Positions 8,355 through 60,615 of a stretch of 64,000 nucleotides of DNA are shown here, piece after piece. Both the position numbers and the translations under genes were made by a program. The DNA lies in the sequence record NC_022096.1; one strand, 5' to 3'. The first letter of the stretch is position 1. The number at the start of each line of letters is the position of its first letter. The notes under the pieces were generated by a model, which was not told the DNA's origin, searched no databases, and was given only the letters and a program-made list of their open reading frames with translations.

Positions 8355-10232
8355 TCAGAACTCGATGTGACGAGCCTTGGTGCTGTGCGTAAGCGGAGTG
8401 CGTTGGTTGCGTGTGATGTCAGCCAACTGGCGTGCAATCTTGCGGTTGACACGCTCATTCGCCAGCTTCTGGTTTGGCAACCAGCGACGTTTGCCGTCGT
8501 GTGTCTCGCCAGCAACTTCCATTGCCTCGCCGAAATTGCGTTGAGCCAGTGCTTTCATGCGACCAGTACCTTCACTGAGCACGGAGCCACGAACGCCACG
8601 GTTGTAGTTCTCGTAGAACAGGTCAGTACGTGCCATTGCAGCAGCAAGTGCTTCGTCACCCCCGCCGGCAGAGTCACCTTCAGGCATGTACTCCTTCTTA
8701 ACGTCGGCGAGACGCTTCTGGTACTTGCCGATACGCTTGAGCAGCTCGAAGTCGTCTTCCTGGTCAGCGAGCAAGGCGTCGAGGTTGAACCCGCCGGCAG
8801 CAGCCATAGCGCGAAGAGGCACAGGAACGCCTTTCTCGGTCAGAGCTTGCAGCATATCGAGATACGCCTGATCGCCTTCAGGCTTGAGCTGCTTGGCCCA
8901 GTGCACCGACGGAATCAACAGGCGAGAACCGTCCTGCAGAATCTCATGGTTGGACATCGAATCAAACTTGTCCAGCATGTTGCCTTTGATGGACAGCTTG
9001 CCGCTACGGTTCACGGTGAATCCGTGCAGCGCCGACACCAGCGGGAAGATTTTGTTGTAGAACAGCTTCGTGGTGATCGTGTCACGATACGAACGCAGAG
9101 CTTCGATGAACACGGTCAGCGACGTGTCCGCGTTGGAGTACGTGGCCTCACCGCTCAGGAAGGACTCGGAGATACCCAGGGCGCGCAGCTTCATCGCCAT
9201 GGTTTGATCCCAGATGTCCGTTACCTTCCAGAAGTCACCACCTTGGCGAATCTCCTCAGTGCTAATACCCATACGGGTTGCGATAACCGCACCCAGTGGG
9301 TCAGCGTCAGCGTTCTGGAACAGCTCCATAGCCATCTGCATATCGGCCATGGTCGGTTCCCACTGGTCACCGTCACCCAAGGTGAGGTGCAGGATACCGC
9401 GCTGACGACGGGCCGACTCCACTAGCGTCCCGCGGAACAGGTTCTTTTCCAGCAGCCAGATTGGCAGGATGCGACGGAAGTACGACACACCAGTCGAATT
9501 GGTGAACGACTTGCGTGGGATGTAGATGGTCGACAGCGGGTCCAGCTCCAGTGCATCGTTACTGATCTGCTTGACGACTTCCGCACCAAGGTACTCGCGC
9601 AGCTTCTTGATCCGTGGACTGTCGCTGCCCATAACTGCCTTGTGGCTGTCAGGGAATGCCACAGTAATCAACGGGTCCTGCGAATAGAACGGCAGCGGAT
9701 CAACCTTGCAGTTCTCATACTGGTGACAGATGAGGTCTACGAAGGTGTTCTTCTGCGGGTTGTACAGCATGTTCGCAACGAACGCGCCAGTCACCTGGTG
9801 GTCAATGGACAACTCGGGCAGCAGCGTACGGATGTTCAGACGTTCGATCACTTCCTCGAACGCTGCACTCACCTTTGGGTTCTGAATGCCGCCGATGTTG
9901 AAGTCGGAGAACGGCAATGTGGACGTCAGGTCAACGCACGATCCACCGATCGGGTCGTTGTAGTAGATGTCCTTGTACAGGCGCATGATGAGCTTCTTTT
10001 GTTCAAGGTCTTCGGAGAAGACGATGTCCTTAAGAAGCGGATCAATGTCGATTTCCAGGGGGAGCGAGGACACGCTGGTGTTTTTCAGCGGAGTACCTGC
10101 GGTAGCCTCAAACCCTTTGCCGCCTTTGCCTCGACGACCTGTATCATGGACACCAATATCGCGTGACGAGGTTGTGCCTGTACTTTGCGGCGCACCCTGA
10201 TGGATGAAACTCTGTTTGGACTTGATGCGCAT
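8355..10232 (-). CDS. portal protein
   Basis: 625 aa next to TerL; IYYNDPIGGSCVDL..LPFSDF and helical organisation as in large-myovirus portals. Confidence 0.75.
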   Translation of the reverse strand: MRIKSKQSFIHQGAPQSTGTTSSRDIGVHDTGRRGKGGKGFEATAGTPLKNTSVSSLPLEIDIDPLLKDIVFSEDLEQKKLIMRLYKDIYYNDPIGGSCVDLTSTLPFSDFNIGGIQNPKVSAAFEEVIERLNIRTLLPELSIDHQVTGAFVANMLYNPQKNTFVDLICHQYENCKVDPLPFYSQDPLITVAFPDSHKAVMGSDSPRIKKLREYLGAEVVKQISNDALELDPLSTIYIPRKSFTNSTGVSYFRRILPIWLLEKNLFRGTLVESARRQRGILHLTLGDGDQWEPTMADMQMAMELFQNADADPLGAVIATRMGISTEEIRQGGDFWKVTDIWDQTMAMKLRALGISESFLSGEATYSNADTSLTVFIEALRSYRDTITTKLFYNKIFPLVSALHGFTVNRSGKLSIKGNMLDKFDSMSNHEILQDGSRLLIPSVHWAKQLKPEGDQAYLDMLQALTEKGVPVPLRAMAAAGGFNLDALLADQEDDFELLKRIGKYQKRLADVKKEYMPEGDSAGGGDEALAAAMARTDLFYENYNRGVRGSVLSEGTGRMKALAQRNFGEAMEVAGETHDGKRRWLPNQKLANERVNRKIARQLADITRNQRTPLTHSTKARHIEF

Positions 10233-59111: not shown

Positions 59112-59348
59112 ATGTTCCTTTCGCTTTGCCTTGGGCTTGCTCTGGTGTGCGTTGAGCCGACTGCTCCGCCTACACGACCAGATGTCGTGTACTACCAGAC
59201 AGAGACCCGCATGGTTGCTGTTCGGGAATACACCGAACCAAAAGAAGTCGCCGCACTTCCGGAACAGAGTGGCGGTGCGCCCTATCCACGATCAGCGCCT
59301 AACGACCGCGGTCGTGAAGGCCACCGATGTACCATCGGGGTTGCCTAG
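59112..59348 (+). CDS. small protein with hydrophobic N-terminus
   Basis: GGAG SD; MFLSLCLGLALVC. Confidence 0.5.
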   Translation: MFLSLCLGLALVCVEPTAPPTRPDVVYYQTETRMVAVREYTEPKEVAALPEQSGGAPYPRSAPNDRGREGHRCTIGVA

Positions 59349-59564
59349 CTGTCCGGAGCTTCCGCGATCCCGCCCCAAACCGAAACACCACATCGCTAGG
59401 CTTAACGGCCAACAAAATCGCTGAGAGCGAATGAAGTGCGCGAGAAATCGTAGGCACTAAGAAAGGGCAAGGCGGCACGTTAGAGAACAAGGCAAGAGGC
59501 TGACTCGCTGGATTTAGCGACCAGATGCGCCGGGAAACAAACCTCTGCCGCCTGCCAACCTAAA

Positions 59565-59641
59565 GCGGACTGATGAGTGGTTCAAGTCCACATGGCGAAA
59601 GCCTCGGGTGAAAGGCCCACGAAACTCAAACGAGTATCCGC
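59565..59641 (+). ncRNA. type I hammerhead ribozyme
   Basis: Stem I GCGGA/TCCGC, core CTGATGA, stem II GTGG/CCAC, GAAA, stem III CTC-aaac-GAG, GUA cleavage triplet (predicted cut after 59636). Confidence 0.85.
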
Positions 59642-59916
59642 ATGAACGCCGCTCCTGGATGAGCGGTGGGTTCAAGTACACCGACCCACTAATCGGGTCG
59701 TTTCTCGGAGCTGCTTCTGCTGAGATTTCTGTGCGTAGTGAGAAGCCATAGGAGCCTTCGGATACCTGGTCGGCTCATGCCGATAGCGCTTTTTCATCGG
59801 CGCTATCGTACAGGGTTATGGTGGTCATGTGAAACACAAGCACATGCACGCTGCACTCGTTCCCGCCCGCGAGTTCCACCATGCCTGCGGTGAAAGCCAC
59901 AGGTGCAGCCTATTTA

Positions 59917-60105: not shown

Positions 60106-60288
60106 ATGTGTATTTGCCGCCGTGCATGGTTCCTGATTGTCGTCAGCGCATTGTACCTGTTGGGTTGCGTTGTCGCATGGTCCATGGGTTGTCTGAATGT
60201 TTACGTCAACCCGGCACAGCTGGTATACGTTGCCGTTCTCTCTGTTCCGCTGTGGTGCAAGTCAGTAGGACGTTTGCTTCACATGTGA
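60106..60288 (+). CDS. small two-TM membrane protein
   Basis: GAGGT SD; two hydrophobic segments. Confidence 0.6.
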   Translation: MCICRRAWFLIVVSALYLLGCVVAWSMGCLNVYVNPAQLVYVAVLSVPLWCKSVGRLLHM

Positions 60289-60294
60289 GTCTGT

Positions 60295-60388
60295 GACCCA
60301 GTAGCTCAGTTGGTAGAGCGCGTGAACGCCTGCGCCGATAGCGGGAGTAACGTCATAGAGGTCGAGAGTTCAAATCTCTCCTGGGTCT
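60295..60388 (+). ncRNA. tRNA-like RNA with expanded anticodon arm
   Basis: Acceptor GACCCAG/CTGGGTC, D arm GCTC-agttggta-GAGC, T arm GAGAG-ttcaaat-CTCTC; 27-nt insert in place of the 7-nt anticodon loop; no CCA. Confidence 0.75.
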
Positions 60389-60405: not shown

Positions 60406-60615
60406 ATGTACACGATGTTGCCGTCAATGCACTTTCCACTAAAGCGTCCTGTGCTTACTCCAGAAGAAGCCAGTGCGTCGCGTGCCAGAACCCTTGAGGC
60501 TATTCGCAAATGCCGCGAAGCCCAAGCTGAACTGGAGCGAGTTTGCCGTGAGAAAGGCATTGAGATTCCGGTGATGGTCTGTCGTTCTAGTTTCCGAGTT
60601 CGTTCGGGTCGTTAG
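60406..60615 (+). CDS. hypothetical protein
   Basis: 69-aa ORF between the tRNA-like RNA and tRNA-Lys; end overlaps the tRNA 5' end. Confidence 0.5.
   Translation: MYTMLPSMHFPLKRPVLTPEEASASRARTLEAIRKCREAQAELERVCREKGIEIPVMVCRSSFRVRSGR

Follow-up and report, generated by a model that had tools for sequence, protein, structure and literature searches.

Does the plus strand of phage PaBG encode a self-cleaving hammerhead ribozyme at positions 59565-59641, and what stands in the place of its stem II? The DNA analysed here (the window, 64,000 nt) matches Pseudomonas phage PaBG (KF147891), a 258-kb jumbo phage of P. aeruginosa PAO1, with 100% identity, and a window position equals the record position minus 62000. 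The element is located in an unannotated 1.5-kb stretch that extends from PaBG_00165 to tRNA-Ala. The plus strand carries all the neighbouring genes and all five tRNA genes around the element, and the nearest downstream tRNA lies ~650 nt past the predicted cut site. The PaBG genome paper reports the five tRNAs and mentions no ribozyme.

The original prediction describes a complete type I hammerhead core at this site and proposes that the ribozyme switches between two folds of stem II while it processes a tRNA transcript. Every feature that it lists is found in the sequence, including the two perfect CCAC partners of the GUGG strand (59588-59591 and 59617-59620), which are real in PaBG. The parts of the element are collected in Table 1. 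On balance, sequence comparison favours the view that 59565-59641 (+) is a self-cleaving type I hammerhead variant, which would belong to an uncatalogued structural subtype present in a few large phages and a Paraburkholderia contig.

Table 1 Parts of the PaBG element and their conservation in the family (window coordinates)
Feature	Position	Strand	Observation
A-rich 5' flank (AAA), just outside stem I	59562-59564	+	In alignment A1, all 7 members have A in column 2, and 6/7 have it in column 3
Stem I, 5' strand GCGGA	59565-59569	+	Pairs with 59637-59641
Core C3-A9, CUGAUGA	59570-59576	+	Invariant in 7/7 except N7 (U or C)
T-arm-like hairpin GUGG-UUCAAGU-CCAC, stem II equivalent	59577-59591	+	Directly after A9; 3/4 pairs changed on both sides; 96% of cells paired
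GGC-GAAA-GCC hairpin in the variable linker	59594-59603	+	Site of tolerated insertion, not a conserved part
Second conserved hairpin (C)GGG-UGAAAGG-CCC(A)	59605-59619	+	Loop and inner GG/CC invariant; two outer pairs covary
Lone C that separates the second hairpin from G12 (11.1 as numbered in the original prediction)	59620	+	C in 7/7
Core G12 A13 A14 A15.1, GAAA	59621-59624	+	Invariant in 7/7
Stem III hairpin ACUC-AAAC-GAGU, including A15.1-U16.1	59624-59635	+	A15.1-U16.1 in 7/7; next three pairs covary
Predicted cleavage site A59636 (H17)/U59637, triplet GUA	59636-59637	+	Position taken from known hammerheads
Stem I, 3' strand UCCGC	59637-59641	+	Pairs with 59565-59569
Downstream non-coding stretch, homologous to L101/L055	59642-59820	+	Found by blastn; the 3' cleavage product would start with it

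The PaBG locus and curated models

Our own descriptor scan of both strands finds the element as the sole type I hammerhead-like site in the window. In dinucleotide-preserving shuffles, 0.0135 sites per window arise by chance when stem II is ignored, and demanding a 4-bp stem II brings this to none in 2000 shuffles. The original prediction called for a search with the Rfam hammerhead models (RF00163, RF00008, and RF02275-7). The outcome is negative: PaBG gives no match at the gathering score, nor at E ≤ 10 over 3.5 kb or over as little as 131 nt, and the loci of the six relatives described below give none at E ≤ 1. Neither the PaBG site nor the corresponding loci of the relatives match GOLLD, ROOL, tmRNA, or any other Rfam family. 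The T-loop hairpin could be read as part of a tRNA or pseudo-tRNA; this reading is rejected on the finding that 59565-59720 receives no ARAGORN call and no RF00005 match, even at E ≤ 10.

The surrounding tRNA region contains further unannotated features. Small ORFs are located at 59112-59348, 60106-60288, and 60406-60615 (+), encoding 78, 60, and 69 aa, respectively. The first is preceded by AAGGAG and has a signal-peptide-like start; the second is preceded by GAGG and has a hydrophobic sequence. The annotated tRNA-Ala(UGC) (60295-60388, +) is 94 nt long and scores 48.9 bits with the Rfam tRNA model, compared with ~70 bits for the other four tRNAs. The model skips 36 nt of it where 15 are expected, so that ~21 extra nucleotides are placed in the anticodon-arm region. 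The gene could contain an intron-like insert or represent an aberrant tRNA.

Relatives and the conserved core

Relatives of the element are sought by exact-pattern scans that are anchored on different halves of the element, none of which requires a whole hammerhead. The patterns are CTGATGAGNNNTTCNANTCC; GGTGAAAGGCCNNCGAAAC, run against viral contigs, metagenomes, and genomes; CTGATGANNGGTTCNANTCC; and CTGANGANNNGTTCNAGTCN{8,38}GTGAAAGGC. The matches of the shorter patterns are mostly chance, coding sequence, or tRNA 3' ends. In particular, CTGATGAGNNNTTCNANTCC returns mostly chance or tRNA 3'-end matches, yet it is the source of the first relative, L017.

The resulting family comprises seven distinct sequences, PaBG and six relatives, each with a full hammerhead core. 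L055 stands for four near-identical contigs (L055, L057, L058, and L101), the longest of which is 266 kb. L145 and L056 are viral contigs of 310 and 219 kb, and L125 and L103 are metagenome contigs of 2.2 and 36 kb. L017 is a 172-kb viral-like contig (IMG/VR), and an identical element (L165) is present in the draft genome of Paraburkholderia sp. BCC1886 (NZ_CAAJGK010000011.1). Therefore, the latter copy is part of a prophage or of some other large element carried by a cultured bacterium, and this strain could serve as an experimental system for the L017/L165 element. Among deposited phage genomes, the only close DNA relative of PaBG is PaBG itself, and a protein-anchored search of the viral contig collection from the upstream gene also returns PaBG only.

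PaBG and L101/L055 are syntenic. Although their flanking proteins are just 25-78% identical, both keep the element, with compensatory changes. None of the other members has a neighbouring gene in common with PaBG or with another member, and nucleotide similarity between members is limited to the element, except for ~210 nt of further downstream homology between PaBG and L055. Therefore, the conserved unit is a module of ~70 nt.

With the variable linker and the stem III interior cut out, the seven sequences align without gaps (alignment A1). A covariance model built from A1 (R1) gives 55-67 bits to the compact members and 38-39 bits to those with long inserts, and it detects the element only once in the window. 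With the same model, a degenerate relative on metagenome contig k87-2464323 (L090, 952-1024, minus strand) scores 23.4 bits. It has the UGAAAGG hairpin, CGAAA, and the closing stem, with CUGAUGA replaced by CCGAU and the T-loop hairpin replaced by a 3-bp hairpin. Judged by its sequence, L090 may be a decayed copy.

The invariant positions of A1 are C3, U4, G5, A6, G8, A9, G12, A13, A14, A15.1, and U16.1, one C before G12, and both hairpin loops except for the R of the T-loop; the loop invariance is partly a matter of ascertainment, because there are only seven sequences and the search patterns prescribed parts of the motif. Position N7 is either U or C, so that the core reads CUGA(U/C)GA. N7 is the sole core position that is left free in hammerheads. 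Across the seven members, 96.6% of the cells of the four-helix structure are paired, and 13 of its 17 pairs are changed on both sides. None of 500 shuffles reaches these pairing and covariation values, and sliding the 3' partners by 1-3 columns reduces pairing to 23-39%.

Stem I is always exactly 5 bp and has an open end, as in the type I topology. All five pairs are changed on both sides, and 97% of the cells are paired. The seven pairings are GCGGA/UCCGC, UCGCA/UGCGA, CAUUA/UAAUG, GCUCU/AGAGC, AUCUG/CAGAU, ACUGU/ACGGU, and CACC(C)/(A)GGUG, the last with one A × C mismatch. The stem is flanked on both sides by unpaired residues, mostly A. By eye, we see no conserved pseudoknot and no extension of stem I past 5 bp.

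Stem III contains the A15.1-U16.1 pair in every member; three of its four pairs are changed on both sides, and 96% of the cells are paired. The cleavage triplet is GUC in four members and GUA, AUC, or GUU in one each, with G never at position 17, where a non-G residue is a condition imposed in parsing the members. The interior of stem III varies from 4 nt to ~200 nt. In the four compact members, closure occurs 11-18 nt from the core and is unambiguous. For L103, L056, and L017, a search of up to 450 nt downstream places the 3' strands of stem III and stem I at a distance of 140-230 nt. The parse of L056 is very strong, with a 10-bp stem III and a 5-bp stem I, and is reached in 0 of 2000 shuffles. 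The parse of L103, with 6 and 5 Watson-Crick pairs, is good. The parse of L017 is not significant (p about 0.35); a shifted register was also considered, and the parse stays ambiguous. Two alternative parses, a stem I that closes immediately behind CGAAAC in L103 and a shifted register in L056, were dropped once long stem III inserts gave canonical ones. The inserts themselves are ~130-200 nt, GC-rich, and hairpin-rich (L103, 1150-1290; L056, reverse complement of 9245-9465; L017, reverse complement of 2312-2460).

In summary, stems I and III are in the hammerhead register and fully covarying, with good support in six of the seven members and marginal support in L017. The hammerhead-type core of the original prediction is thus borne out by six relatives that keep the core nucleotides between stems that covary in exact register.

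The stem II region and alternative readings

In a hammerhead, the closure of stem II directly on A9 and G12 is held to be a fixed feature, and covariance-model searches depend on it. The family has a different order after A9: a 4-bp T-loop hairpin, a linker or extra hairpin, a 4-bp UGAAAGG hairpin, one C, and GAAA. The stem of the first hairpin is GUGG/CCAC, ACGG/CCGU, CCGG/CCGG, GGGG/CCCC, GUCG/CGAC, or GCCG/CGGC. Its loop is UUCAAGU in six members and UUCGAGU in L017, which fits the T-loop consensus UUCRA with variation at R only. At the sequence level, the hairpin has what defines a T-loop, a U-U-C-R-A core, with U and A at positions 1 and 5 able to pair, on a covarying 4-bp stem. The linker is 3-5 nt in L055, L145, and L125, a small hairpin in PaBG, a different small hairpin in L103, and 41-46 nt in L056 and L017. 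The second hairpin, NNGG-UGAAAGG-CCNN, also has 4 bp, and its outer pairs covary (G-C/A-U and U-A/C-G); the outermost pair in PaBG is a C × A mismatch. The original prediction noticed both hairpins, and both turn out to be conserved.

It is the roles assigned to the two folds that fail. In the original prediction, pairing of GUGG with the distal CCAC gives the catalytic fold, and the proximal T-loop fold destroys the core. However, the two-hairpin fold is 96% paired across the family, with compensatory changes in both hairpins. Therefore, it is the conserved architecture and not a competing fold. The distal helix is present in PaBG only. Written across the family, it is 68% paired without meaningful covariation; positions 10.2-11.2 are unpaired in four of the seven members, and positions 10.3-11.3 in three. 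The invariant C before G12 could pair with N10.1 in only five members, such a pair being impossible in L055 (A10.1) and L056 (C10.1). By eye, no alternative stem II of at least 3 bp can be drawn in L055 or L145. The distal pairing in PaBG is most likely incidental. A stem II helix with a 10.1-11.1 pair that joins A9 directly to G12 is thus not what the family has, and because the canonical stem II is missing and the curated models do not recognise the element, we class it as a putative structural variant of the type I hammerhead and not as Hammerhead_1 as modelled.

The same observations bear on whether the element cleaves at all. A hairpin placed between stem II and G12 might not be compatible with the geometry of A9 and G12. 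It could be a conserved structured RNA that is not catalytic and keeps a hammerhead-like junction for another reason, for example a mimic of the tRNA elbow or of a 23S rRNA hairpin that serves large phages as a protein-binding or decoy element. We consider this somewhat unlikely. It would account for the UUCRAGU and UGAAAGG loops being the most invariant parts outside the core, and it fits with the lack of a canonical stem II and of any match to the Rfam hammerhead models. In addition, a 19-nt string that covers the second hairpin and the core, GGUGAAAGGCC..CGAAAC, is also present in a bacterial 23S rRNA gene (L136, 7327-7345, metagenome contig BNJS01002078.1), in a match that spans positions 409-1283 of the Rfam LSU model. 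We cannot tell whether this string is a coincidence or mimicry of an rRNA hairpin. However, if the RNA were not catalytic, it would be very surprising to find exactly the essential hammerhead nucleotides retained and N7 alone free. The same goes for the A15.1-U16.1 pair and for the unpaired non-G residue that separates the covarying stems III and I. Furthermore, two additional scans that require only the T-loop and UGAAAGG module never find it without the hammerhead core.

The original prediction suggested a two-state switch, with the T-loop fold as the OFF state and with firing when GUGG (59577-59580) re-pairs with CCAC (59617-59620). Both GUGG partners are perfect 4-bp matches in PaBG, and the two folds are ~5 kcal/mol apart: the minimum-free-energy fold of the 77-nt element is the proximal (T-loop) fold at -25.2 kcal/mol (-26.7 kcal/mol for an 87-nt slice), with four hairpins and stem I closing, and enforcing the distal stem II gives -20.4 kcal/mol at best. 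However, the distal pairs have a probability of 0.003 in the PaBG ensemble, and the distal helix is specific to PaBG, with relatives that cannot form even its first pair (L055 and L056) or any drawable substitute (L055 and L145). The distal CCAC is overlapped by the second hairpin, and formation of the distal helix would destroy two hairpins that are maintained by compensatory changes. A switch of this kind is very improbable.

A chance hammerhead-like string in an unannotated intergenic region is effectively refuted by the invariant core, the stems covarying in register, and the recurrence of the element in six further distinct homologues from unrelated contexts with compensatory changes in four helices, even though a relaxed descriptor gives 0.0135-0.07 matches per 64-kb window in shuffles and a scan of many windows would therefore meet such strings.

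Transcript context, proposed cleavage, and known systems

Wherever enough surrounding sequence is available, the element runs in the direction of the neighbouring genes, and in L125 and L056 it begins right after the stop codon of a same-orientation upstream gene. These positions fit the processing of a polycistronic phage transcript. Such a setting is the usual one, though functionally unexplained, for hammerheads of bacteria and phages (PMC3088659; PMC10085705). In PaBG, the L055 group, and L056, tRNA genes are present within about 1.3 kb of the element, the nearest one at 500-1300 nt; none is found in the 2-13 kb fetched around L103, L145, L125 (a 2.2-kb contig), and L017/L165. The processing of tRNA transcripts, which the original prediction proposed, is therefore not supported as a general role, with tRNA genes nearby in just three of six contexts and none of them abutting the element.

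By blastn, PaBG and L101/L055 are 63% identical over ~250 nt, in an alignment that runs from -40 to +210 with the second hairpin as reference. The conserved ~200 nt downstream of the element correspond to 59642-59820 (+) in PaBG and 3670-3875 in L101; the stems of the terminal hairpins differ, and GUACA(A)GGG follows in both. Terminator-like hairpins of PaBG are located at 59769-59784 and ~59783-59810, about 130-170 nt downstream of the cut site. The conserved downstream segment may be a small RNA with a ribozyme-made 5' end. Within it, 59651-59711 (+) has the layout of the hammerhead with a broken core: GCUCC, UGGAUGA, a GGUUCAAGUAC hairpin, ACCC-ACUAAUC-GGGU, CGUUUCUC, and GGAGC. By its sequence, this segment looks like a degenerate tandem copy of the element; it receives no score from model R1 at E ≤ 10. 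At the equivalent place, the homologous L055 sequence contains CUGAUAAG.

If the element is a type I hammerhead variant, as we favour, its parts could be arranged as follows. The T-loop hairpin would act as stem II and loop II. The second hairpin would be an insertion on the outer strand of the stem II/III stack, between 11.1 and G12, from where it could leave the stack without a clash with stem I and fold back onto the T-loop. It would pack on the T-loop through its GG, as in the tRNA D-loop, or through a loop-loop contact between UUC and GAA. Such UUC/GAA pairing is possible, and covariation cannot test any contact between the two loops because all the residues concerned are invariant. The hairpin cap would in turn contact the A-rich residues on either side of stem I, whose length is fixed at 5 bp, providing a tertiary contact between stems I and II. 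Natural hammerheads need such a contact at physiological Mg2+ (PMC3088659).

By analogy with known hammerheads, the cut is probably made after A59636 inside a phage polycistronic transcript. The plus-strand RNA would cleave itself between A59636 and U59637. The upstream RNA would keep nearly the whole ribozyme and end in a 2',3'-cyclic phosphate; in the relatives with long stem III inserts, the insert would sit at the 3' end of this product. The downstream non-coding RNA and the tRNA region would be released with a 5'-OH and with a scar of only 5 nt.

A more elaborate possibility is a natural allosteric hammerhead, in which a tRNA-elbow-like module serves as stem II and catalysis depends on, or is tuned by, a factor acting in trans. 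Candidates are factors that recognise the elbow or the rRNA-like UGAAAGG hairpin, for example another RNA, a ribosomal protein, or an enzyme that modifies or processes tRNA. We regard this as distinctly unlikely; if true, the element would be a timer of transcript processing in large phages.

Cleavage by the element would mean that the best-studied small ribozyme tolerates a wider range of structures than is known and that current models overlook real hammerheads in phage genomes. It would also reveal a natural conserved domain, possibly recognisable by a ligand or protein, at the place where synthetic biologists graft sensors. For PaBG, part of a blank 1.5-kb stretch gains an annotation. Our searches of the open-access literature find nothing relevant on hammerheads in jumbo phages.

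Among the closest known systems is the type I hammerhead (RF00163, Hammerhead_1; bacterial and phage examples in Perreault et al. 2011, PMC3088659), which has the same strand order: 5' strand of stem I, CUGANGA, stem II region, GAAA, closed stem III, UH, and 3' strand of stem I. The PaBG family shares with it identical core nucleotides, covarying stems I and III, and a phage intergenic location. In contrast to the type I hammerhead, the PaBG family has a T-loop hairpin, a linker, a second hairpin, and one C in place of the A9-G12 helix, can carry stem III inserts of 130-200 nt, and is not detected by the Rfam models.

Known variants show how far the class can depart from this plan. Natural hammerheads tolerate a very weak stem II, with 1-2 bp or U-U at 10.1-11.1, and use varied tertiary contacts between stems I and II (PMC3088659); pseudoknot contacts and rearranged connectivity, as in the non-circular permutations, are tolerated if the core and three helices are kept (PMC3088659; PMC10085705). 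Unlike the PaBG family, the variants described in these papers have no hairpin inserted between stem II and G12 and no T-loop as loop II, and we find no precedent for either in the open-access literature.

The two hairpins resemble parts of tRNA. The loop UUCRAGU matches T54-Psi55-C56-R57-A58 of the T-arm with variation at R only, and the second hairpin resembles a D-arm in its 4-bp stem and in the GG at the end of its loop. However, the stem of the T-loop hairpin has 4 bp and not 5, the order of the arms differs, and the elbow-like contact is here a proposed one. The HDV-like theta ribozymes (PMC10879173) are also a small self-cleaving class in tailed phages, and PaBG, the L055 group, and L056 likewise place the element in a tRNA region. 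They belong to a different class and abut tRNAs, whereas the PaBG family lies 500-1300 nt away from tRNA genes and half of its contexts have none nearby. Finally, engineered aptazymes carry a sensor grafted on stem II. The PaBG family, which is natural, has a conserved structured domain at the same place.
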